From Corallochytrium limacisporum Hawaii (taxonomy: Eukaryota > Protista > Pluriformea), in contig PDIP01000008.1 in assembly GCA_002811645.1 (NCBI GenBank), positions 78,749 to 142,748 of the forward strand: a DNA stretch of 64,000 bases. The letters run 5' to 3'. The notes beneath the pieces were generated by a model. It was not told the DNA's origin. It ran no database searches and worked only from the letters and a program-made list of their open reading frames with translations. Of this stretch, positions 27,207-57,550 are shown one piece after another. Numbering within the stretch: position 1 is the stretch's first letter; each line of letters begins with the position of its first letter. Position numbers and translations under genes: made by a program.

Positions 27207-30200
27207 TGCAGCTTCTCCTCTAACTATTGACAGGAGTTTCCCGTTTCAAATTACACTTGGCGTATAGTACGATTTCTTAACTATGGTATGGGTTTGCTAT
27301 TAATTGTTAAAGAAAACTACGATCCGAATCTACGTAGATAGAAATCTTATTCCTTCTTCTCCTCGGTCTTGCTTCCCCCGCGCATAGACATAATCAGGTA
27401 CACACCAATAGCACCGCCAAGCACCGCAAAAACAGTCTGCATATACGAAAAACATTTTGAACAAGAATTCCAAGTTAGTCTACAGTTCCGATAGTCATAA
27501 ATCCCTGAAAGTAGGTCTACCACCAAATACTTACATTGCGCCGTCCAGCCCGGGTCACGGTGTTGAAGATGCGTGGATCATGAGGTTCGGGTTCTCCGCC
27601 GGCCATTTTGACGATATCAAGATGTTTCTTGTTCTGACAAACAATTTATCCCTTGTTTACTAGTGATGAACTCCGTAGCGGAATGAAATTGGAAGGTTTG
27701 CCAGCCTCATATAGGTATGCTGAAGGCGAACAGACTGAATGAACTACACCCAGGGTACTGTGTGACCGGCTCACTAATCCCAAGCCGGGTTCTTGATTGC
27801 ATCGCAGTGTGTGCACACACCACCATTACACGGCCCGTTCAACAATTGACACACGGGGGGTGTAGCGTGCTACCAGACCCTCTGTATCCATTGTTTGGAC
27901 CAATTGTTTATGTCCAGTGGGTGCAGTACATTCACTATAATGAATGACAGGGTGAGTAAAAGGGACCATGACGGTAGTCTCAGTATTGAAATAGGACAAA
28001 CACCTGAGGGGAGTGAGGGGGAGTCACAATAAACTGATGCCCCAAAATATCGTTAACTTGAAACATTGATAACTGATACTCTAACATACATACTTATTTC
28101 AAATTAACTACCACCAAGCGCTCGAGGGAGAAGCGACACAATGAAGGAAAATTCGTCAGCACGCGCAGTGATCCACCAGCCCACTTTCACTGCTGCTCTA
28201 GTAATTCTTTGTGGTCACCCAATTTCATAAAAAGTCAATGAGACATTCACTCAGCGAAACCTTCGTCGCGAGTGCACGAGGACGGAGTTCATTGCCCATG
28301 CGTGGGTGTTCCCGAAAACACTTCAATGAATCCTTCACTATCATCGTGCTAGACTTCCGTTCGAAAGCAGTGGAGGTCTAGATACACTGACCATGGCAGG
28401 CACGAATACCCTGCATGCTGGGTTATGGATCGACTGAGAGCGCTGTGTGTTCCTGTACCGTGTTCGGTGCGCGCTGCCAGCGTTTGGCAGCTGTAAGTTG
28501 TCCACCAGAGTTGTCCTTCGTCCCCATGTCATGGCAACCGTGTTTCGACGTCCCATACATATTGTTCCTTTGTTTCCTTTAGGATTCGCTATCCCTGGTC
28601 TCGATCGTCAGGTGGGGCTGAAGGGGGGGGGGCTTGTTGGACCAGAGCCTGTGGAGTGCGCGCGCCAAAGAAGTATTTAGAGAGGGAGTTTTCTCAACAT
28701 CTTCTTGTCTTCTAAGATGTACGTTTAAGTTGGACAAGGTTAGAAGACAAGACTGGGCTCACCGAGATCCTGTGATGGCATCTGACCGTTTCACAGTACA
28801 TATAGTACGCGATTGGTGCACAAAGATAACCTGAGCTTTAAGGTACCTACACGCCAATCGCAAGAGGGTAGGAACTGGAACGTTCCTCATATTCTAATTG
28901 CGCGGTGCCAGAAATGGACAATTCTAATAATGAACATACTGACAAACCTCTAAGTTTCAAATGGGTAAGGGCCCAGACTCCCTGTGGAACAAAGCCGACT
29001 CAGCCCACGCTCAGTAACTTTCAACTTCCTTTGACTTCTTATGCTGAATTCATAGAACTAGCCTGTGATGCGGTACCATCGGCCGATGCGGACTCGTTTT
29101 GCCAACACGTTTTAGTCTTCATCGTTCGAAGTCTCATCGCAATTCGACGATTTCTGGTAAGGCGAGCCAAGATTCAACTGTGTGCATGGAATGTTGAGTA
29201 ATAAGCATGTTTCGAATTCCGAAGGAAATTAGCTCTTGCGTTTGTCTGCGACATGGTTCCCCGGGATTCGTTTGCAGACCTCGCGAGTTTTCGCCAATCC
29301 ATCCACACAACAATTGTTACGAGGCTCCCCGCCCGCGAAATGAAAGGCACATTCAGCTTTCGATGAATATGACAAGGAGCGCCCAAGAAAAAATCAATTA
29401 GCTAACAATGTCTAAAGAGTGAACGCAGCCCAAACTTGTGACGAATTGTTGATGTTCACTTGTCGTGGGCTGACGTGTTGATAAGCCCAGTGCACAGGGT
29501 TGGTCAATACATTTACTACTAATATCCCGCGTGCTCATACAGAGAGATAAAGAGAAGCGTGCGTTCAAACAGTTGGGGCTGTTCATGTCTTCCCCTTTAT
29601 CGGATTAGGAACATCCAAACGAATTCGCGGTCAGGTTGCCAGCCATTATCAATGGTCTTGGCCAATGCCGCCACTGTTGTACCTCCTTTGATTTCAAGTT
29701 TCGACTCCGAGTCTTGTGTGGGCAGAAGTACTAAGAAACTGAGACACTGGACAGATTAGTGCCCCACTCACCGCTGCTAAGTTTACGGTCCGAATGAGCA
29801 GTATTGTCCCGTAGGATCCGACCTGGGATATGTATTTTCTAAGTTGGAAAGAAGGGAGGCTAATCAGGTCCGAGATATGGGCCGCGGGGAGCGAAAAATA
29901 CTTCACCTGTCAGGGTCATACATAGGACGAGTGCTCAACAGAAACGTCCGATAAAGTCATACGAGTGAGCCAAAGAAATTCGCAGGGAAGGGGGGAGGAT
30001 TGCACGCACCCTTGCTGTCCGGCGCACTCCGGAGTGATCCGGAGTGTATCCGAGCGATTTGGGGAGGAAGAGGAGGGTGGGGGGACGTTCCCAATATACC
30101 TACGTGTTTTTGCGTTTCCGTTTAACAGGATGCGTTCGGTTGCATGTGGCTGGACTCGCTAATGGATGTCTGCGTCCCGCTACCTCAAGTCTCTTGGTTC

Positions 30201-32874
30201 TGCCTGGTGTTGGAGACCCCAATTACGGTACAATAGACCAGTGTTCAGAGCATAGGCTCCTAAGACCAAGACGAGGTGTGAGAGAATTCTGATTTCGTCC
30301 ACCTTACTGCTGGACTGTGAACCCGTCCACAAGGACGCCTATAATATGATTATTTATATTGCTTGTCCACTCCATACTTCCTCGGAGAAACCAGCGCTCG
30401 CGGAATAGACGCATTTTTGTGTTTCATCTTTAGAGAGGCTTCTGCTGCCTCGTGGGGACTAGACGCGAACATTGCTCCCAATTTCACTTGATACAGCCAG
30501 TGGGATGTCAGTGCAGCCATGGTCGAAACAGCTTTCATTTCACGGTACCGATGGAGCGCACGGCATTCACCAGCACAATTAGGTCGGCATAATGATGTCG
30601 TCTGTGACCAAGCCATGAATTGGGAGTGCATTTGGTCAGGCTCCTCTTGATATCGGATTTCGCCCGCCTGGATTACTCTCGACTTGACTTTTCCTTGGTT
30701 TTGCGTTAATGAGAGCTGCAGGGAGAATGGCCTGTGAATGCAGATCGATAACCCGCACAATTACCTCCGTAACCCCACTTACATCGTCGAGTCAGCCATT
30801 ACTTAGTAAGGATACCTGGATTGCTGATGGGATATTGACTCCGTACACACCTCACCAAGCATATGGGTCAGGGGTACCTAGCTGTGCAGTAGGAGGACAA
30901 GAGTACAACAATAGCGTTTCCTTGTCGCAGGTCCCAAAGAAACGCATTGTATCAAATGAACGGATGCGACCGAGATATATAGAACAGAGATAGTCTTCTG
31001 CCTAAGAAGTGGTAGGAAAAGATCAGTTAGAAAACAAAAACAGAAAACGAAAGACCCTTCCATCGCGGAGTTCGATCCAATTACAGTTTTCTTCGCTCAC
31101 CCTCAGCTCCGCCGCTGAAACGTACACCCACACAAAACACAGGCCCCGAAAGCATCTCCAGGTTCTGGACGAGAAGTAATTGCCCTTTGTACTTCAGCTT
31201 CGACTACTGTGAACGTACATATATCCCCGGCCACGCGCAGGGTGTGGTTCTCCCCCTTTTTTTGCGTTTTTGTCGCATACACCGCGTACTGTTTCTGTGT
31301 TTCTCTTCAACCGTCAAGGGGGCGCAAACTTGCTCGTGTTTGGGACCCAATGTTGCAGGGAATCATGACATTCTCCGAGTCACGGTGGTCTAACTTTAAG
31401 CATTGGCTGCGGTTGCTAATAATTTTATTGTGCGTTCCCGTCGTCCAAGCTCACCCTATAGCCTCGTTGAGACTACGCTACATGTTCTGCGAGCGCTGTT
31501 CCCCACTCTCCTTCGTATACGTTCAGAGTTTTGTTTCCTTACCACGTAAGAGAAACCGGTCGGGGTGAGCGGCTTCGAGACCTCGTGTCGCGCCGGAGAT
31601 TTTCTGGGTTTGTTGGGGAACAAAGAAGGTATCGTATGTGGCGACACAAAGGGACCCTCGAGGGGTTCTGGAGGACGGCAAACTGTGATTGGCACCTACT
31701 TAGACTTCCTCAAGGTTTATGCTAAGCTAGTTTGCTAAGGAATTTCTATGGAAATGGAAAGAGTTCAGTCAAAACGTGCGGAGTATAAAGATACCCCTTT
31801 ATTTCCCTTTGAGCTCCCGCGGGCGCATCCTTGGAGGAGGAGCGACACAGATAAAGCAAATTCAAACACAATGGGGCTTGGTATAATTTGTGCCCATATG
31901 CTGGGTCACAGTGCAGCAAGGACATTCTGACCAGATGATGTCAATGGTAGCACACCACTATTGCACATGGAGGAAGCAACGTGTACTGAGAAGAAAAATT
32001 TTATCTCGTTGTTCTTCTCTCTGCTCCGTGATGTTCAGGTAGTATTCAGGGTCGTCTTCCCGTTGCTTTCGCTGTCCACTGTTGCCCTAGCTAGTTCCTG
32101 TTGTAGGCGGTGAAACCGTGTGGTGCGTCACTATTTATTCAGTACATCCAATATGGGAATTTGAATGGACGGGGTCAAGCGCGGAGACGACACCATCAAT
32201 GTTTGAGGCGGTGTGTGATCCTTGTCGGTGGCGTCAGCGCCAATTTATTGGCTGAAAGCCCTCTCCCTACTGTCGCTCGCTTCAGCCTCCCACTCATGTC
32301 ATCTCGTCTCATTCTTATGTATACCAGGTATTAAGCTGACTATGCTCCTCGTGCTCGTAGCTGAGTCCAAGCTGAGCTCCGCCCATGCCTGGTTAAGGCA
32401 GCCGAAATGCGCTGTAAGCGTTTCTTCGTTCCTGCGCAGAAATGAGATTGATTTGCTGCATATATCGGTAGAGAGGAATCGCGGGCCCCATCGAACTCCA
32501 AGACCGACTTTCCGAGTTACCTATGAAACCCGAGATCGAAGGGCAATAGGCAATATGTGCAAATCCCCGGCAAGACGGCAAGCCCGAGCACTTTTCGTTT
32601 GTGAGTGCGCTGAAGATCCTACGCAATCCGAGGGAAAACTTCAGGAACCAACAATGCAGCATAAGAGTTGGGGACCTCGCGGAGGGCGTTGATGGGAAGA
32701 GGGGAAAGGGATGTTGTCGAGAACCCCCTTCCCCAGACCTGCTGCCCTAGGAGCCGACCTGTATACAAAGTACCGACGAACTTTTGAAACGGAAAACCGC
32801 TGGTCCCAGCGAAGGGCGGGGGCCTCGGCAAAACTGCGGGTGCGACCATTGTTGCGTGAAAGGTGCTGTGGTGC

Positions 32875-47443: not shown

Positions 47444-50296
47444 CTAATCGAACGGAATGACAACGGAACGGTATCGTACGTAATCGCGAATGATCCAGAA
47501 TGAGGAGCGGATCTGTTTTTCCGTATGGCTTTCTCGCATGGATGTAAAGAATTGGTGCTTCACACGTTCGCTCACCACGAGATTGTCAATCTCTTCCAGG
47601 ATCCGCTGCAGAATGGCGTCAAAGCGTCGCTCAATGATTTGGTGAATGAGCCACAGTAGCTCCGCAATGTCCACCAGGACGTACCGTGGCAAGTCGAAGG
47701 CCACAGCAAGGAAACGACGTATCAGGCTGTAGTCGTACTGCTTTAGAAAATCGGTCGTGACACCGAAGGTGATAGAGCTTGCACCGCCATCGTTGTTTAA
47801 TCCTTCGGACAGAACCTTGGAATACAGTTCGCATACACTGCCGTTGGCTTCCCGGTGGTCCATGCACACTCCGTGATAGGCCAGCTGCATGACCAACGCG
47901 AACAGATCGCTGGTCATAAAGTCTACGGGATACCACTTGAGCATCTTGCACTGCAGACGGAAGAAGTCTTCGACGACATGCGGACTGTTGGTGAAGTCTT
48001 CCAAGCTCTGAAGTTTGCCAAACACCTGCTGGCACATCAGGCGATGCATGTCGAGCAGAGGCTGCCGAAACGTATCACCGTACGGTCCGAGTACGTCCAT
48101 CAGTGTACACGCGACGTAGAGGTAGGCACTCTGACCACTGGCATGGTATGCTTTGGCTAGAAAATCGACAAGCGGCATGAAGAAATTCTGGGCTAAGATA
48201 CCCAAGTTCTTGATCAGGTACCGAATGCATCGGCACAGATTCTCTGTCATCCGCGTCTCATTTGTGTACAATTCAGCTGTTTTCTCAAAGTAAGGATACA
48301 ATTCCTCGGCAAGCGCGACCATAGGATTTTTTTCATGGCTGCGCTGTTGTGCAGGTGGGATCTCTACGCTCCGAAAGATGTGGCTCAGCGAGTACAGTAC
48401 ATTCTCCAATCTTGTCTTCTCTCGCGACTTGATCCGTTGATCGTTGTCCACCTGACTTGACCACTGTAACAGCTGCACCAAATCAGAAATGAAAGGACGA
48501 CATAGGTCATTGAGAGCGACCTGCATTTGTTCAGGTGGCATATGCAAAATGACAGCCATGGTACCCTCCAGTGCGTCATTGTATTCCGCTGGTGAGACAT
48601 GCGACTGCTCAGCGGCGGTCAGGAAGTGTTTAACCGTGTTCAAATGCTGCACAACGTTGGCACGGCTGGACAAGAGTACTCTACGTAGAGCGCGGCAGCT
48701 ATAGTGTTGCAGGTCCTTCACCTGGACTGTCATGATACAGATCTGCAGGAATTCGCCTACGAATTCGCTGTGTGTACGCAACCAATCGTCCAATCGACCG
48801 AGCAACTGCAACGAAGTCGCTCTCAGGCATGGGTGATTTCCATCCTTAGCAAACGACACTGCAGTGGCAAAGACATCCCGTGCCATGCGCGACTGATCCG
48901 CATCAATCATGGTGATGATCCACGAAATACAGAAGAGACGCGACTCCACAAGTTTCCAGTGTACATTTCCTGCGGTCAGTCCCCCAGCATGGCCATTGCT
49001 TACGCCTTGGAAATTGTTCAGAAGTAGTTGGATGCACGGTTCCACGTCGACCATTAGCACGCAATCCTCTAAGATCTCCGCTGCTTTCTCGCGCCGGTAG
49101 ACAGCTTCGTCGTTCTTTGACAGAATCTTTTCTACGTCCTCCGGTAGCTGAACCAGGTCAGCCAGCGTCAGAACCAGCTGCTCAAAGTAGGGTCGGAAAG
49201 TGGGGATCACCGCCGGACGATTTGCATCGATTCCATTGGCCAACTGGTACCAGAATCCAAGACATACTTCACTAATCTCGTAGTCTCCATACTTCGTACA
49301 CACCAGAATCACCTCCACGATCTCCAGCCAAGCTTCCGAGGCTTGATCAATAATCATGTCTACAAAGCTCTCACCAAGATCGCAGAAAACCACAGCCAGA
49401 TGCAGGATGGTCTCCGTGTCTTCTTCGTTTATGGCCTTAGCCAGATTCTGCCGCAGGCTCATGACGGCAGGCACAATCTTTGCCATTAACGGATCGTATT
49501 GCTGACGATCGTCACAAACGTACAAAATAGCAGAAATGGCCTCACATGCCGCATCCGTGAGCATCGGCAAACTCACAGCTTCAAAAGTAAAGGAAAGGAT
49601 TGGAGATTCAGCTAATTGTACAATCTCCAGGCACTCGTATCTTACCCAAGCAGCCAGACAGCGGAACAGAGCGCGATAGTTCGCGGCAAGTGTTGCCTCA
49701 TCAAGCGAATTTCCTTGTGACGGACTAAGTGCTGAAAAGCACTTGTTCATTGTGTCTAAAGCCTGGTTGCCGAAGCGATACAACTCATCCCGGAACTCAT
49801 ACCGCCGCTCATCATCAACGCGCACCTTGTAGTTACCAGTCTCATCCGGCAGTGATAGTAGGAGTTCGATCAAAGGCAAGAACTCGGAAGTGTTTTGGAC
49901 CTGATTGAAAAGACCCAAAACTGGTCGAATGGGTTCCTTCCAATCCTCAAATTGCAGCGCAAGGTCTGCCACAGCAGGCGCCAACTGCCTGATCAGTATG
50001 GGCTCCGTACGGTTTCCCGGTTGCGTAACAATATGCAACAGTGAGTCTCGTAGGGACGGCAGAGACTCCTTGGGCAGCTCCACAAGGTCGTCTTCTATTT
50101 TCCGTCGCATGGTCATTGCTGCAAACACTTTTGCATCCAAGGGTACATCAGTTGTGTTCAGAATTATGTCGCAGACCTGCCAGGCCTCTTGCGACTTCTG
50201 TACCTGCTCCAACCATGTCTGTACACTAACGTCACCGCCATGCATACGCTGCAGCGCTGCGAGCACTTCTTGCGCCTGAGCGTTTGGATCTGACAT
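47444..50296 (-). CDS. TNPO3: Transportin-3 / Mtr10 (importin-beta family)
   Basis: WLEQVQKSQEAW, FAAMTMRRKI..DL.ELP..SLRDSLL, CLGFWYQL and PHVVEDFFRL. First ATG is 50296; the track start at 50323 is GTG. Confidence 0.88.
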   Translation of the reverse strand: MSDPNAQAQEVLAALQRMHGGDVSVQTWLEQVQKSQEAWQVCDIILNTTDVPLDAKVFAAMTMRRKIEDDLVELPKESLPSLRDSLLHIVTQPGNRTEPILIRQLAPAVADLALQFEDWKEPIRPVLGLFNQVQNTSEFLPLIELLLSLPDETGNYKVRVDDERRYEFRDELYRFGNQALDTMNKCFSALSPSQGNSLDEATLAANYRALFRCLAAWVRYECLEIVQLAESPILSFTFEAVSLPMLTDAACEAISAILYVCDDRQQYDPLMAKIVPAVMSLRQNLAKAINEEDTETILHLAVVFCDLGESFVDMIIDQASEAWLEIVEVILVCTKYGDYEISEVCLGFWYQLANGIDANRPAVIPTFRPYFEQLVLTLADLVQLPEDVEKILSKNDEAVYRREKAAEILEDCVLMVDVEPCIQLLLNNFQGVSNGHAGGLTAGNVHWKLVESRLFCISWIITMIDADQSRMARDVFATAVSFAKDGNHPCLRATSLQLLGRLDDWLRTHSEFVGEFLQICIMTVQVKDLQHYSCRALRRVLLSSRANVVQHLNTVKHFLTAAEQSHVSPAEYNDALEGTMAVILHMPPEQMQVALNDLCRPFISDLVQLLQWSSQVDNDQRIKSREKTRLENVLYSLSHIFRSVEIPPAQQRSHEKNPMVALAEELYPYFEKTAELYTNETRMTENLCRCIRYLIKNLGILAQNFFMPLVDFLAKAYHASGQSAYLYVACTLMDVLGPYGDTFRQPLLDMHRLMCQQVFGKLQSLEDFTNSPHVVEDFFRLQCKMLKWYPVDFMTSDLFALVMQLAYHGVCMDHREANGSVCELYSKVLSEGLNNDGGASSITFGVTTDFLKQYDYSLIRRFLAVAFDLPRYVLVDIAELLWLIHQIIERRFDAILQRILEEIDNLVVSERVKHQFFTSMRESHTEKQIRSSFWIIRDYVRYRSVVIPFD

Positions 50297-50746
50297 CACG
50301 TTTATTTGTACTATGATGGACACTCTCGGGAGTGTCTCTCTACTATGTGATCATATTGAAGCCGTGCTCAATGACGCGCATATCGGCAGTGTGGTGTGCA
50401 TGGGTCCTTCGTTTGAAGTTTCCCTTGCAGATTATTATCTCAAGACAGGCGCCTGTAATAAGTAGCAACACACGAAAGACCTTTGTCTGAAGCGGGCACC
50501 ATTGTGTTCATCGAATGCCACGGGGTCTTCATTGTGTCGTCTCAGCATGGCGCACCCGTCCGTACCTTCTCCGCCGGCTAAGAGACCGACCCTCGCGGGA
50601 CTAAAGCTGAACCTATTGCCGCCCATATTGAATTCCAATTAATGACTTTAAAATGTTAGGGGTCATCTTATTTGATACGGTGGGACATTGAGAAGGGATA
50701 GTGGACATAGTGGGGGGATGCGAATGAGTCCCTAAAGTTCTTTATT

Positions 50747-52624
50747 TCATCTACCAGCAGCCATGTTGTGCCAAACAACCGCAGTGTCCTGCTCGGTACG
50801 GATCGGAATGTTGGACTTCAGGTTGAAGATCCGGCTAAGAATGAGCGAGAAGAGCTCACGAATGTTGATACCATCCGCGGCACTGCAAAAGATAAGCACG
50901 GCATTCAGTTCCTTGGCAATTGCCAATGACTCTTGCTGCACCTTGATGCGTTCGGCATCCGGTAGCTCGATGAACTTATCGTACTTGGTGCCCGCAATGA
51001 TGGGCGCTGCATTGGGGTTGCCCGACATGGCCAATTGGTACCAATCCTTTAATGCCTCTAGCGAATACGGCTCACTGAGATCATAGACGTAAATCAGCGC
51101 CTCCGATTCCCGCGTGACTGTCGGGAAGCTGACCTTCTTAAGAGTCATCTCTGTACGCAGCCCAAGATCCCAGATGCTGAAGAGCACGGCATTACCGCGG
51201 ATGACAATCTTCTTTTCGTAGTTTTGTACCCGCTTGGTAGAATTGTAGGTGCGATCGAAATTCTGCGAGATGAAGCGATTGATGATGGATGTCTTACCCA
51301 CTCCGTGGTCACCCAGAACTCCAACTTTGACAATGATTGCCGGCCGGGCAGCTGAGCTCATATTTGAAGTCAAGGACGTGATGGTGTTCTGCCGAGAGCT
51401 TGTATCTGAAGTCGATGACGCGGGAGATTGACTACCCGGTTGTACCTTCTCCACCAGAGAGGTCAACTGGTTGCCCTCTGCGCTCTTCCTCAAGTTCAAA
51501 CTGTTGTTCTTTGACTCTGCGTCGACGCCACTGTCCGTGGAACTCATGGAAGTCTGTGCACCTACCGCATTATTGGCCGCAGCAGCGGCTTGTTCCTTGG
51601 CTAGCTGCGCAGAAATGGCAACACCTTCTTCTTCTTTGAGCGATATTGTGGCCTCACTGATCACATCATCGAACATATTTGTGACCTTGTTCACTTCATC
51701 TTCCTCAGTAGTGGGCGTGTCTATGCTTTTGGTAGTTCCAACCGCGCTCTGCTGCTCTGCGACAATGCTTTCCAGCTCCTTCATGATCTCATCTTGATCA
51801 AGGCTCATTTCCCGCAGATCAGGATTCTCCATGCTAACATCCCGTGTTGATGATGCATTGGATGCCGCCAAAGTGGACTGTGAACCAGACGTGTACCGAA
51901 TATTGCCTGCTGCCTGGCTGCTCACATTGCTATGAAGACTGCCCTTCCTTCCTACGAGCGTTGCGTTGCTGTCTTGTGTTTCTAGCGGGGCTTCTTCCGG
52001 AATGCTTTGTCTGCCGCCATCCTCTGCAGATGAATTCCGTTTCGCCATTGCTGCTCCGGCGCGTCTGCTCACAGTCGTGTAGTCCTTTTCCTTTATACCC
52101 GCGCTGTTGTCAGACAGCCATTGCTGGAGGCCCTCAATCCAGACCTGGGTATTATCTCCTGAATTCCTGCGCCATACAGAAGGCGGAGGAACAACAATTT
52201 CATTGCCTTCAATGCTTAACTCATCGACAGCAAGATTTTGTAGGTACGGAGGCAAGTGTGTGATCCGGTTGTAGCTCATGTCTAGCTTCTTTAGTAGCGC
52301 CATCCATTCGGGTTCCTTAGGAGGCCATGTTGCTACCTTGTTATGTCCCATAAGTAATACTCGAAGGTTCCGCAGCTGCGAAATTTCATTGGGAATTTCT
52401 CTTAAGCGGTTCCACCGCAGATCTAGCTTGTATAGCAAGTGTAGGCTGTTCAGCGAAGCTGGACACTTCTTCAGCTGGTTCCTGCAGACGACAAGACACT
52501 GTAAGTGCTCCTTTAACAGACTAACCTCTGCAGGGATGCTTTTTAAATTCTGCCCGGACAGATCCAAATCCTTGGACTTGCCTTCTTTGGCTTCACGCAA
52601 TTTGCGTGATACTGCGCTGCCCAT
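50747..52624 (-). CDS. Predicted N-myristoylated LRR protein fused to a C-terminal Spg1/Tem1-like small GTPase domain
   Basis: MGSAVS N-terminus and about 6 LRRs (LDLSGQNL, LDLRWNRL, LLMGHNKV, LDMSYNRI). Ser/acidic linker. G domain GDHGVGKTS, FSIWDLG, GTKYD and LIFCS. Confidence 0.85.
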   Translation of the reverse strand: MGSAVSRKLREAKEGKSKDLDLSGQNLKSIPAEVSLLKEHLQCLVVCRNQLKKCPASLNSLHLLYKLDLRWNRLREIPNEISQLRNLRVLLMGHNKVATWPPKEPEWMALLKKLDMSYNRITHLPPYLQNLAVDELSIEGNEIVVPPPSVWRRNSGDNTQVWIEGLQQWLSDNSAGIKEKDYTTVSRRAGAAMAKRNSSAEDGGRQSIPEEAPLETQDSNATLVGRKGSLHSNVSSQAAGNIRYTSGSQSTLAASNASSTRDVSMENPDLREMSLDQDEIMKELESIVAEQQSAVGTTKSIDTPTTEEDEVNKVTNMFDDVISEATISLKEEEGVAISAQLAKEQAAAAANNAVGAQTSMSSTDSGVDAESKNNSLNLRKSAEGNQLTSLVEKVQPGSQSPASSTSDTSSRQNTITSLTSNMSSAARPAIIVKVGVLGDHGVGKTSIINRFISQNFDRTYNSTKRVQNYEKKIVIRGNAVLFSIWDLGLRTEMTLKKVSFPTVTRESEALIYVYDLSEPYSLEALKDWYQLAMSGNPNAAPIIAGTKYDKFIELPDAERIKVQQESLAIAKELNAVLIFCSAADGINIRELFSLILSRIFNLKSNIPIRTEQDTAVVWHNMAAGR

Positions 52625-55093
52625 GTTGTTGGCTTATATTTTGCTACTTTTCCGCTGTTTTAGTATCCTAGGTCATGGTTCGACCCATTTCGCTACCATT
52701 TCGTCAATTTATCATTCACAATTGGATCAATGGAGCATGACTTGACCATGAACTGAGAGTCAAGTACCGTGTGTGCATGTTCTGTTTTGTCTACCACCCT
52801 GTCGGACTCCTTCAAAAAGATATTTCTTGTCTGAAACACCATGTCACTGGAAACTTTAAATGAGAGTTTTGCCCAGCAGCGAGTGCATCGTTTCACGTCC
52901 AATTACAAAAAATGAAACTAAATGCAATCGGAAACATTGTAAGCTTGTCACAAACATAGAAGCAGCACAGCAGAGCGAAGCACCTCTAAATTAAGAACCC
53001 CTGTTCACAATGCGAGGCAGGAAAAAGGCCTGAACCAGACTGAGCCCGGATCACACGGACCTCATTTCTTGCCCAGTTGAGCGAGGGCCCCTCGCCCCTC
53101 TCCTTTCGCCCCGGAAACCCACGGTCGCGCACAGCAGCAGCGATAGCCGCACCACTTCGCCGAAGTGTCACATAGAAAAGTAGCAGACCCGAAAATGCAG
53201 GCCCATACACTGGGTAACGAGACATTAAACTGGAAAAAGTAAGCGGGAAAGAAAATAAGGGAAAAAATAGAGTGGCCGAGGCACACACAGCAAGAAAAGA
53301 AAAGGCAAGAAGAAAGAATGAACGGTTTCGCGCTTTTGAGGCCCGCGCGAAAAAAAGGGAATCGAAAATTCGGGCCGGCCTTTTTCTCAAGGTGTTCGCC
53401 TCCCTGCGCAGGGAGAGTCGAAAACCTCCTTCTTATCTATATGTCATTTCCAACAATCATCATAAATGCTAGGACAAGCTCTCTGGCTTACGCTTTAGCC
53501 GCCTTCCCAGAATCCCCCCACACTCTTGAACGCCATGGGGTTCCCCTCGAGCGATAACGTAGGTGGGTTCTGTACTGGAATGCATGCAGGTGCAAGCCAA
53601 ATGAAGTGGCACACGCACACGCACACACACACCCACCCGATGTGCTACACCGGGATGTAACCGATTCTGCGTATTCGCGATGGATAAAGTTGCCAAAAGA
53701 AGAAATTAGACAGAACAAATTCGAAACGTCCCGCTAACGGTGTGTTCTGTAGTTTCAATGGTACACGCAGAAGGTATTGCCGCGAACCCGACACGGCAGC
53801 ATGACTGAGAATCGCGGCAGCGGCCACCAGCAGTAGCGGCGGGCACCGTCCGAGGACGAAACTAACCAATTTTTCGTAAGCGAGAGAGGGTAGAAATCAT
53901 CCACCGAGACAAAATATTGGCCAATGCTGGCGCGCGGAGGGAGAATTCGTGGACCACTGCCGACAAATGAACAAAAGGTAAGCGGGAAGGGGATAGATGA
54001 GCTGCGATGGGAAGCTGCCGAAACCCATGCTTCCCTTTTACTTGATCATCTTTTGAACTGGGCTCCGGTCGTTTGCGATGCACCACTTGGACACTCGGGT
54101 CCACGATGCATTGATTGAGAAGGAAAGGCAGGGCTGGACCACACGGGAAGGTCTGAAACACTTGATCAAAACACCAAAGAATGCTTGAGAACCTACTACC
54201 AACAGGGACACCACAATGAAGTAGTTAACAATCGATTACTTTAGGAAGAGGGTCCTTCAGCGGGAGGGAAGCAATGGGGTTCCCTCCGACAGACAAACAG
54301 GGGACTATGGCGGAGAGTTTCCCTGCCCCCCCGTGACAAGGGGACTTCGCTGTTTTCTGAAACCCCACTCCCGCCCCCGTTGGGTGCGGTGGGGAGGGGA
54401 CCCAACTGTTTCAGTGTCCGAACCCGTTCGGGTTGCTTCGAAAACTTCAGTGTTTCAACGTGAGAACTGGGTTTAGGACGAAAGACCCTACGGCCGCCGT
54501 GTGAAGGGGGGGTGAAGCTGATGTCAACGAAGGGTGACGCTGCGACGCGGTCACAGCCTCATAATTTCATACAGTTAGTACTGAAATTGATCAATCCTCC
54601 AACGACGGTTGGGGGGGGGTTGTTGTTGTTGGTGGGGGGCGGGAAAACAAGGAGGCGGGGAGGAGGAGAGTGTTGTCTTGGCTCCGATCCGTACGCGCAT
54701 CGAATGCTGAAATGGCGTGGGGAGGGGAGTCCACTTTCGTGCTAACCGGGCCCCGGCCATTTGAATTCAATATACGGAAACACCGGGCGATTCGGGTCTG
54801 TGCAGGAGCGAAGGAGAAAAAGCCGGCGGACGGGTGGCGCGCGCCCGGGTTTGATCGTGAAAGTGTCGGCGGGCCACCAGAGTTTGCGAGCTTGAAGGTT
54901 CGCCTCGCCACACACAGGAGACACAAGCTATCTGACATTTCTATGTCCGGAAGTGAAAGACGTCGTGGAGTCTAGACAACCATGAGGGCACCATTATGGT
55001 GTTAACTGTATGGTGGTCAAGTTGTGATCTAATTTTGCAACTGGGAAATCATGACATAGAACGAGTTAGTTAGTCCTTTGACCCTCAGCTAAG

Positions 55094-57550
55094 ATGGAGA
55101 GTGCTGCGCACCCCTTCATGTCTATGGAGACAGCTCTGTTGTATCCAGAGGAGCCAAATTTTGTCTGGGATGATTGCAGCGTTTTCATCAACGAAGCCAA
55201 ACCTGAGTGTTTGATTGAAGTACAGACGGGGAGGCTGCGGACATGTAATTTAGAAGTCGATGTGGTGCAGAACGCATCCACAAGAGCAAGCAGAAAATTC
55301 GACAAGGCACCAGTGAGAGTCACTGGTGATTCCGATACCACAGTCACCCCACATGAGGACAATCTTCGAGGGCGAAGTCGAACCATCTCACTCCCGATGG
55401 AGAAACCACTTATCAATGCAGCACTGTCACCGGATTGGATGCTTCTTGCTTTGCAATTTACGCCAAACGAGGTCTGGGTTGCAGGATTTGATGGGGGCCA
55501 TGTCCAAGGTGCTGACGATTCCGCGGATCTGACGGTCGGGACCAAGGGTGTCAAGTTGCGCACAAACGTGCAAGGGGGCCACAACGCACGTATCCTTGGC
55601 TTCTTGTGGACGTTTGTGAACGAGCTAGTCATAATCACAGACAGGTCCGTGGAATTGTTTCAGATTATTGTGCAAGGTGATGGGAGGAAGAAAGCCTTGC
55701 CCACGAAATCGTACTCCCTGTCGGTGTCATGGTACCGCTACAGTGCAGAGAGACATGTACTAATGATTTGCGGTAACCCAGATGGCAGCCTCTTTGTGCC
55801 GATTCAGTTCAACTGTGGAACTTGCCACAGACTTATGAAATTTAATGTGAAACCAACAGTGAATCGATTCGGCACGGCTAAGCCGCGCGCACCGATGATG
55901 TTCTCAGCTGGTCTGAGTTCAGTGTGCAACATTTACGGCCAACTTTTGGGCGTCTTTGTTGTACCCATCGGTAGAGAGGAGCAAACAGCTGAGATGAAGA
56001 GCAGCAGAATGAGTCCAAATGCTGATGAGTGGCCAGTAAACCTCATGGTTTATAAGATCACCCAGGTGCAATCACAACAGATCTTGAACTTCCCGTTGCC
56101 AATTACAAAGGTGCGCAGTTTGTGCATTATGGACAATCTGGTGATTGTCCACGGCCAGCATGCAAGCATGGCCATCGATCTTTTTGACGTTCTCTACTCA
56201 GGACAGCTCACGTCCGCTCTCAAGCTTTGCTCCGATGTGACTTCACTGCAGCAGAGTACAACACATGATGCTCAGTCTGGTATTGCCAAACCATTCATCA
56301 ATGCGAACACTACAGTGGAGGCTATCCTGGACCACGCCCTGAACACCCCAGAGAATGTGGTAGAACCATTGAAACACAACACTCCGATACTCATGGGTCC
56401 TGCACCGGTCTTCATGACACACGCGCGTGGAAGTCTTGCAGGACTGGTCACCCCATTGAAACAGGGAGATATGGACGCCTCGTTCATGTCATCTCACATT
56501 CCGCACATCCAACACTATGCCTTCCTCGGCCATGCTGCGGCTCTTGCTGCCTCAGAGGGTCATTTTGCCTGGTTCGAGCTCGACTTGTGGGCGGCAGAGT
56601 TTTATGTCGTCGACCCCTTGCAGGTTGTGGCTTTCCACATGCGGCGACGAAAAGGTCGACCAATTCTGCGTGCATATCTTCTGCAGCAAATGAAGGATGT
56701 GGTGCATCTGAACAACCCGGACCATTTAGATGATTTGTCCGCGATCCTGCGCCTGGTTCTGGCTGCGCCTGCGGATAAGGCGTCATCACGGGAAAGCAGT
56801 GACCTGCGCTCCACGGATTCGGAAGTGACTCCCATGAGTCTAACCCGCGGTAGTTCCGCTGCACACTGGGAGCAAGGAACGACCAGCAGACTCGGGCTCC
56901 TTCGACGCCGAGCGACTCAGTACATGACGGCACGAGGTGTTAATCCAGGCTGGCAGTCAAGTCCTTTAGATCTAATTCTCGTGTACGTCCGTGGATTGGA
57001 CCTAGACAGCATTATACTTGACGTTGTCTTGCCAGCATCACGTGTGATCAGCAAGGTTGAGGAGGACGAGTATGACTATGATGCTGTATGGCTCGTCCTC
57101 ATGTGCTCGACAGTGATGGAAACTAGTCTCCTTGTCAATGACGGTGCGGGATGTCACGTGTCGCAGGAGACCATGGCAAAGGTGCGCAGGCTTCTTCACA
57201 AGGTAGACAAGGACGATATTGCATTGCAGCTGGCTGCCATGCTCCCGACTCAGAGTGATACCACTGAAATTAATCGATACCGCCGCGAAGCTCTGCAGTC
57301 CGTTTTCAACAAACTGAGCGTGGACACACTCATTTCCGGCGACGTTCCCTCAGAGCAGCTCCTGACGTGGACACAGGCGCAATTCCGGCAGGCCCAGGAC
57401 GAGAACGATGAGAAACGCATGCGTGATATCATTGGCTTTGTGGAGAAAAGCGGACTCACTGATCGTGCTAGAGAGATATACAACACCGAGGCACTCCAGT
57501 GCCTACGAGATATGCACCACGAACTCAAGGCGATGCAGATGCAGCATTAA
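55094..57550 (+). CDS. RMC1: Regulator of MON1-CCZ1 (RMC1/Mic1/C18orf8)-like protein
   Basis: The N-terminal propeller region LSPD..LLALQ, ILGFLWT..ELVIITDRSVELFQI..KSYSLSVSWY and MDNLVIVH resembles RMC1. The C-terminus is divergent. Confidence 0.7.
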   Translation: MESAAHPFMSMETALLYPEEPNFVWDDCSVFINEAKPECLIEVQTGRLRTCNLEVDVVQNASTRASRKFDKAPVRVTGDSDTTVTPHEDNLRGRSRTISLPMEKPLINAALSPDWMLLALQFTPNEVWVAGFDGGHVQGADDSADLTVGTKGVKLRTNVQGGHNARILGFLWTFVNELVIITDRSVELFQIIVQGDGRKKALPTKSYSLSVSWYRYSAERHVLMICGNPDGSLFVPIQFNCGTCHRLMKFNVKPTVNRFGTAKPRAPMMFSAGLSSVCNIYGQLLGVFVVPIGREEQTAEMKSSRMSPNADEWPVNLMVYKITQVQSQQILNFPLPITKVRSLCIMDNLVIVHGQHASMAIDLFDVLYSGQLTSALKLCSDVTSLQQSTTHDAQSGIAKPFINANTTVEAILDHALNTPENVVEPLKHNTPILMGPAPVFMTHARGSLAGLVTPLKQGDMDASFMSSHIPHIQHYAFLGHAAALAASEGHFAWFELDLWAAEFYVVDPLQVVAFHMRRRKGRPILRAYLLQQMKDVVHLNNPDHLDDLSAILRLVLAAPADKASSRESSDLRSTDSEVTPMSLTRGSSAAHWEQGTTSRLGLLRRRATQYMTARGVNPGWQSSPLDLILVYVRGLDLDSIILDVVLPASRVISKVEEDEYDYDAVWLVLMCSTVMETSLLVNDGAGCHVSQETMAKVRRLLHKVDKDDIALQLAAMLPTQSDTTEINRYRREALQSVFNKLSVDTLISGDVPSEQLLTWTQAQFRQAQDENDEKRMRDIIGFVEKSGLTDRAREIYNTEALQCLRDMHHELKAMQMQH

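Follow-up and report, generated by a model that had tools for sequence, protein, structure and literature searches.

Organization of the locus and of the fusion gene

The 64,000-nucleotide stretch analysed here (the window) covers positions 78,749 to 142,748 of contig PDIP01000008.1 of Corallochytrium limacisporum Hawaii (assembly GCA_002811645.1). On its minus strand, positions 50747..52624 hold a single open reading frame (ORF) of 625 codons, which starts with ATG-GGC (MGSAVS) and is predicted to encode leucine-rich repeats (LRR) fused, through a long linker, to a GTPase (G) domain of the Spg1/Tem1 family. The features of the gene and of its predicted product, with the evidence for each in brackets, are as follows.

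50747..52624, minus strand: whole gene, a 625-aa ORF, stop codon included, no intron needed (codon statistics)
52571..52624, minus strand: N-terminus, aa 1-18, with MGSAVS as consensus for N-myristoylation and, after it, a basic patch, R7 K8 R10 K13 K16 K18 (sequence)
52175..52570, minus strand: six leucine-rich repeats, aa 19-150, of the SHOC2/Rsu1/Roco "Ras-group" type (Pfam, AlphaFold2 model, Foldseek)
51350..52174, minus strand: linker, aa 151-425, with a Ser/Ala/Thr/Glu-rich composition, disordered or modelled at low confidence for the most part (composition, coding statistics, pLDDT 31-56 over most of it)
51563..51796, minus strand: predicted helices within the linker, aa 277-294 and 307-354 (AlphaFold2 pLDDT 53-83, moderate confidence, no alignment depth there)
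51359..51361, minus strand: internal Met422, a possible alternative start, 8 residues ahead of the first G-domain strand (sequence)
50750..51349, minus strand: Spg1/Tem1-family G domain, aa 426-625, no C-terminal Cys (Pfam Ras, identity to the organism's own Spg1, trees, AlphaFold2 pLDDT 91-98)
51290..51313, minus strand: G1 P-loop GDHGVGKT, intact (sequence, family alignment)
51227..51238, minus strand: switch I TKRV, Thr kept, family Gly (72/84) replaced by Arg465 (family alignment)
51155..51169, minus strand: G3 DLGLR, DxxG Gly (74/84) replaced by Leu489, Gln position occupied by Arg490, then a 3-residue switch II insertion (family alignment)
50978..50989, minus strand: G4 TKYD, the Spg1/Tem1-type variant of NKxD, intact (family alignment)
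50876..50887, minus strand: G5 CSAA (CSTS in the organism's own Spg1), Ser581 kept (family alignment)

The ORF contains no in-frame stop, whereas the other two frames contain 35 and 32. Upstream of the ATG the open frame extends for only 3 more codons (628 aa), and the start context is AACAACATGG. Codon usage was scored with a model trained on 17 long ORFs of the window, in which the training genes themselves score 0.14-0.30 (log-likelihood per codon). In frame 0, the LRR scored +0.13, the linker +0.19 and the G domain +0.28, the last being the strongest coding signal within the gene (GC content at third codon positions, GC3, 0.65), while the off-frames scored about -0.26 to -0.46 across all parts of the gene, with -0.37 and -0.28 in the linker. 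Since frame-0 codon usage is favoured throughout, the Ser/Ala/Thr/Glu-rich middle is read as coding sequence and not as a spacer between two genes; the single stop-free ORF and the coding-type codons running through the linker thus bear out the initial annotation of this DNA, which had described one fused gene. None of the long ORFs of the window requires an intron, and the published genome of C. limacisporum has a size of 24.1 Mb with 0.0 introns per kb of coding sequence (CDS; PMC5560861).

Placement of the G domain in the Spg1/Tem1 family

Searches of the genome (assembly of 24,109,830 bases in 286 contigs) revealed that the separate canonical Spg1 whose existence the initial annotation had raised is indeed present: the best within-genome match to the fusion G domain is a 236-aa ORF on another contig (L002:1354-2061; contig C237, about 30182-30892, + strand; 38% identity, E 2e-47) that constitutes a canonical stand-alone Spg1 with the motifs WDLGGQ and GTKYD. 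All other small GTPases of the genome are at most 30% identical to the fusion G domain. A HMMER search of 1.84 billion representative proteins, clustered at 50% identity, returned 11486 matches to the G domain; among the best 150 of these, which were inspected, the best non-self matches were Spg1/Tem1 proteins (37-38% identity, E about 1e-33), and the names found among the relatives included an Entamoeba "septum-promoting GTP-binding protein", the TEM1 (YML064C) cluster and fungal small GTPases.

Maximum likelihood trees were calculated under LG+C20+F+G4 with posterior mean site frequencies (PMSF) for 128 and 104 rows, and under LG+G4 for 35 rows. A Spg1/Tem1 clade including the fusion G domain was recovered with a Shimodaira-Hasegawa-like approximate likelihood ratio (SH-aLRT) support of 99 in the 128-row tree, and with ultrafast bootstrap (UFBoot) and SH-aLRT supports of 100/99 and 99/99 in the 104-row and 35-row trees, respectively. 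The clade is long-stemmed (stem 1.1) and contains all named Spg1/Tem1 proteins. Approximately unbiased (AU) tests on the 35 rows under LG+G4 rejected a grouping of the fusion G domain with Roc (delta lnL 20.8, p 0.011) and a grouping with the Rab/Ras/Rho proteins of the genome (delta lnL 58.7, p 0.003). Trees and AU tests therefore agree with the initial annotation in assigning the G domain to the Spg1/Tem1 type and not to Roc or Rab. A Rab identity was considered separately and rejected: the protein has no C-terminal Cys, it falls outside the Rab groups in all trees, and the AU test gives p 0.003.

The end branch of the fusion G domain measures 1.65, against 0.09 for the canonical copy. Because the genome also has the canonical stand-alone Spg1, the fusion G domain is, by its phylogenetic position, an extra and fast-evolving Spg1/Tem1 paralogue. 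The canonical protein, for its part, lies on a very short branch beside fungal Spg1 proteins, and a holozoan-like genome has thus retained this GTPase.

Besides clade membership, the fusion G domain shares with Spg1 of Schizosaccharomyces pombe, Tem1 of Saccharomyces cerevisiae and the organism's own orthologue the motifs FSIWDLG and GTKYD.F, an IFCS-type G5, an IN..LF helix and an NLK..IP tail, and neither the fusion protein nor the own Spg1 has a prenylation Cys. The known members of the family are stand-alone or carry unstructured N-terminal extensions only, whereas the fusion adds six N-terminal LRRs, a 250-aa linker and a myristoylation consensus. It further departs from Spg1/Tem1 by DLGLR in place of DLGGQ, TKR in place of TLG, a 3-residue insertion in switch II and a very long branch.

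Conserved and altered motifs of the G domain

Pfam matched aa 433-599 to Ras (1.5e-22) and to Roc (4.6e-17). In the full-length AlphaFold2 model the G domain reached a predicted local distance difference test (pLDDT) of 91-98, falling to 73 at residues 490-500 (switch II), and the model superposed on Rab and Rac structures (template modelling score by target 0.80-0.89), indicating a Rab-like fold. A sequence search found no solved Spg1/Tem1 structure.

Alignment of the fusion G domain with 84 Spg1-clade representatives defined 35 columns conserved at >=80%, and the fusion is identical at 27 of them. The residues kept include G438, G443, K444 and T445 of the P-loop, T463 of switch I, D486, G545, K547 and D549 of G4, S581 of G5, and N587. 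Six conserved columns are altered conservatively. Two changes are non-conservative: in switch I, residue 465 is Arg where the family has Gly, and the DxxG glycine at 489 is replaced by Leu. All motifs quoted in the initial annotation were located where it had placed them, from the P-loop, switch I TKRV and G3 DLGLR to G4, G5 and the C-terminal tail motif ILSRIFNLKSNIP.

The claim of a broken G3 proved to be partly correct. The DLGLR sequence is there, and the losses of the DxxG glycine (Gly in 74/84 representatives) and of the switch I glycine (72/84) stand; the argument from the missing catalytic Gln is weakened, as that position holds Gln in only 36 of the 84 representatives, with Asp in 12, Ser in 9, His in 7 and Arg in 2, and about 17 other representatives have a degenerate G3, e.g., P0076 from Bolivina. 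Across the family, as far as this alignment indicates, loss of the catalytic Gln is common and loss of the DxxG glycine is not. In Ras-like GTPases the DxxG glycine is required for the movement of switch II.

Degenerate-G3 Spg1-like paralogues of other protists (P0076 from Bolivina, P0110, P0096) resemble the fusion protein in belonging to the Spg1 clade and in combining an intact P-loop and G4 with the absence of the DxxG Gly, the Gln or both; they differ in that none has an LRR, and no supported sister relation to it was found for any of them in the 104-row tree. Together with P0133, P0185 and others, these sequences look like repeated evolution of non-canonical Spg1-like paralogues, a subject that the literature searched does not seem to treat.

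The LRR module, the linker and the N-terminus

Pfam detected LRR_8 (2.3e-09), LRR_1 and LRR_14 at aa 20-171. Lacking an alignment for the LRR, the full-length AlphaFold2 run wrongly rendered aa 1-175 as low-pLDDT helices; the LRR was therefore folded separately, with an alignment of 45 LRR segments. The resulting model of aa 1-180 (pLDDT 86.5, predicted template modelling score 0.80) has a helix at 3-13 followed by beta strands at 19, 43, 66, 89, 113 and 135, about 23 residues apart. Six strands correspond to six repeats, so the initial count of about six LRRs holds by Pfam and by the model. Foldseek placed SHOC2 (E 3.5e-9), Leptospira LRR proteins and Rsu1 as the nearest solved folds. SHOC2/Rsu1-type "Ras-group" LRR proteins are thus the best structural neighbours of this module, and, according to the titles of PDB entries, the concave face of SHOC2 is where a Ras-family GTPase binds; the fusion protein differs from them in having six repeats only, a GTPase in cis and no known partner. 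Within the genome, the closest LRR belongs to a SHOC2-like all-LRR protein and is only 31% identical, which argues that the genome contains no recent donor of the module. This all-LRR protein has 581 aa (L050:229-1971, +).

The linker had been annotated as a Ser/acidic stretch of roughly 270 aa. A Ser/acidic coding stretch it is, but its length is closer to 250 aa (176-425) and, given the predicted helices, disorder does not extend over all of it. One of these helices is about 48 residues long, and they could represent a coiled coil or a docking helix.

The N-terminal MGSAVSR, in which Met-Gly at the start is joined by a small sixth residue and a seventh other than Pro, fits the PROSITE N-myristoylation pattern G-{EDRKHPFYW}-x(2)-[STAGCN]-{P}, so that the annotated myristoylation consensus is present in the sequence, and the genome has one N-myristoyltransferase (NMT) gene (1.6e-74). 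The last 10 residues of the fusion protein include no Cys, so it cannot be prenylated. An N-terminal Met-Gly lipid anchor in place of C-terminal prenylation is also found in the N-myristoylated small GTPases of the Arf family and in plant ARA6/RabF1; these belong to other families, and their anchor sits directly on the G domain, whereas the predicted anchor of the fusion protein lies 425 residues away from it.

Occurrence of the domain architecture

The initial annotation had presented the architecture as not described elsewhere, and the searches agree with it, as phmmer found no match to the LRR or to the linker among the best 149 relatives of the 11486. Pfam found no LRR in ten long Spg1-like proteins, whose odd extra domains were IBR and PRELI, and no close relative of the fusion protein was found in metagenomes. 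A word-index search with the full-length protein returned only LRR and Roco proteins, matched through the LRR; the G region returned one Asgard protein, and the G domain alone two unnamed small GTPases, blanks that reflect the index and not absence. In the protein Atlas, the whole protein came close to cyanobacterial Roc clusters at scores of at most 0.86, which were taken as leads and given no weight. A literature search joining Spg1/Tem1 with leucine-rich repeats yielded nothing beyond an unrelated MOB review. The combination of a lipid-anchor signal, an LRR and a divergent Spg1/Tem1 paralogue is, among the proteins covered by these searches, found nowhere else.

No COR domain was found in the fusion protein by Pfam or anywhere in the genome with PF16095, in line with the earlier statement that this is not a Roco protein. 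Roco membership was rejected on two grounds, since there is no COR in the protein or the genome and the G domain is not of the Roc lineage (trees, AU p 0.011). Since the best 149 relatives have no LRR, the genome no COR and the metagenomes no close relative, the LRR-Spg1 fusion looks lineage-specific, with the qualification that an orthologue of great divergence may have escaped detection, as inspection covered only the best 150 of the 11486 matches and clustering at 50% identity underlies the set of representatives.

Roco proteins (LRRK2, MFHAS1, bacterial and Dictyostelium Roco) likewise have an LRR, of a similar type, N-terminal to a Ras-like G domain. The fusion differs from them in that it has no COR, its G domain is C-terminal and, by phylogeny and AU test, not Roc, and a 250-aa linker takes the place of the direct apposition of LRR and Roc. 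The resemblance looks like architectural convergence. Other multidomain Ras-like proteins of the genome are Miro and a GTPase-PH-ArfGAP protein. Miro (GTPase-EF hands-GTPase) is encoded at L038:133-2013 (-), and the GTPase-PH-ArfGAP (AGAP-like) protein at L040:1-2247 (-).

Neighbouring sequences

Downstream of the fusion gene by 423 bp, on the same strand, lies a gene for a Transportin-3/Importin-13-like protein of 959 aa (47444-50323, -; Pfam TPR_TNPO3_IPO13, Xpo1 and IBN_N). On the other side, positions 52625-55093 form a stretch of 2.47 kb without a long ORF, between the fusion gene and a divergent gene at 55094, which is large for a compact genome.

Discussion

The explanation we consider the most probable, on the strength of the predicted sequence features, is that the locus holds a real, lineage-specific gene in which a short SHOC2-like LRR with a myristoylation signal became fused to a fast-evolving Spg1/Tem1 paralogue, yielding a non-canonical switch or docking protein. 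Several observations weigh against it. The long branch (1.65) could equally mean relaxed constraint; the fusion G domain has no supported position inside the Spg1 clade in the 104-row tree; no orthologue was found among the best 150 of the 11486 HMMER matches or in the metagenome scan; and the link to the septation initiation and mitotic exit networks (SIN/MEN) has family membership as its sole ground. In addition, because the Gln position varies within the Spg1 family (Gln in 36/84), the loss of Gln alone is no proof of lost GTPase cycling.

The last point leads to the alternative of a normally cycling GTPase, in other words an ordinary switch with a membrane anchor and an LRR, to which a TBC-type GTPase-activating protein (GAP) of the Bub2/Cdc16 kind provides the catalytic residues in trans. 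The GAPs of Spg1/Tem1 are TBC proteins, and in Rabs TBC proteins do supply catalytic residues in this manner; the Roc domain of LRRK2, which has Arg at the Gln position (as do 2 of the 84 representatives), still hydrolyses GTP; G1, G4 and G5 are intact; and the genome has, as a lead, a Bub2-like TBC-only protein. We nevertheless regard a cycling enzyme as unlikely, given that the DxxG glycine (74/84) is Leu in the fusion protein, the switch I Gly is Arg and switch II carries a 3-residue insertion. These same non-conservative changes in both switches, the terminal branch of 1.65 against 0.09 and the missing orthologue would suit the opposite extreme, a pure pseudo-GTPase, unable to bind nucleotide and left with a structural or docking role alone, or a gene drifting toward loss. 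This appears a little less likely again, since none of the P-loop GxxxxGKT, TKYD or the G5 Ser is lost and 27/35 conserved columns are kept, the G domain outscores the other parts of the gene in coding signal (0.28 per codon, GC3 0.65) and its fold is confidently predicted.

The remaining alternatives concern the protein as a whole. The G domain might also be made alone, from Met422 or from an internal transcript, in which case the fusion would not be the main or only protein; Met422 lies suitably, 8 residues ahead of the first G-domain strand, and canonical Spg1/Tem1 proteins are stand-alone. We hold two products to be improbable in view of the one stop-free frame, the coding-type codons across 250 linker codons in which the other frames are stop-rich, and the compact genome of Corallochytrium with its 0.0 introns per kb of CDS (PMC5560861). 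A degenerate Roco protein, LRR-Roc with its COR lost, would account for the order of LRR and then GTPase, for the Pfam Roc match of 4.6e-17 and for the Roco proteins retrieved through the LRR by the full-length word search. This origin is very hard to reconcile with a G domain inside the Spg1/Tem1 clade (Roc grouping, p-AU 0.011) and with the blank genome-wide search for COR-A; the Roc match is not discriminating, because canonical Spg1 proteins match Pfam Roc as well.

Returning to the non-canonical switch or docking protein, the fusion product would be N-myristoylated and seated on a membrane with the help of the basic patch, a membrane seat of the myristoyl kind being suggested by the missing C-terminal prenylation site. 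The G domain probably still binds guanine nucleotide, because G1, the switch I Thr, G4 and G5 are intact and 27/35 family columns are kept. Normal on/off switching would be lost, with the canonical movement of switch II gone, as can be reasoned from structural knowledge of the Ras family, because Leu occupies the place of the DxxG Gly, Arg that of the Gln, switch II carries an insertion and switch I has acquired an Arg. The domain would more likely be fixed in one state or act as a nucleotide-dependent docking surface. The LRR may recruit a partner protein, and the long, Ser/Thr-rich and partly helical linker could act as a flexible tether that may be phosphorylated.

Spg1/Tem1 triggers cytokinesis and mitotic exit in yeasts and is not known from animals. 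Members of the family typically act at the spindle pole, upstream of the kinase Cdc7/Cdc15, under the control of the Bub2/Cdc16-Bfa1/Byr4 GAP. The likeliest field of action of the fusion protein would be the SIN/MEN-like module of the canonical Spg1, i.e., the cortical control of cell division or cellularisation, which is the weakest step of the proposed mechanism. Other potential components of such a module were detected as leads: the genome has four Mob-family genes and a TBC-only protein of 308 aa (L070:1351-2277, contig C181), the nearest Atlas clusters of which include "related to cell cycle arrest protein BUB2" (score 0.94), and which is a candidate Bub2/Cdc16 GAP for Spg1. We infer that the fusion protein may be a membrane-tethered non-canonical switch or scaffold near this module. 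A more specific version, in which a cortex-anchored, one-state Spg1 paralogue uses its LRR and G domain to dock, at the plasma membrane, components of a SIN/MEN-Hippo-like kinase cascade, is a long shot. The Spg1/Tem1 proteins form a broadly conserved but little-studied GTPase group (PMC4736243), and Corallochytrium is reported to divide both by binary fission and via coenocytes, with nuclear and cell division uncoupled, and to be stably transfectable (bioRxiv 10.1101/2020.11.12.379420). If the specific version were true, this animal relative would possess a distinct control of cytokinesis or cellularisation seated at the membrane, and this might partly account for its uncoupled nuclear and cell divisions (bioRxiv 10.1101/2020.11.12.379420).

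According to the predicted features, a close unicellular relative of animals keeps the canonical Spg1 together with a second, LRR-carrying version that has a membrane-address signal and an altered switch. Should this version be an idle lineage-specific fusion, it would be a mere curiosity of domain shuffling; if it is expressed and functional, it would represent a natural experiment in which a spindle-pole GTPase has been rewired to the cortex of the cell, and a convergent counterpart of the Roco LRR-GTPase design.

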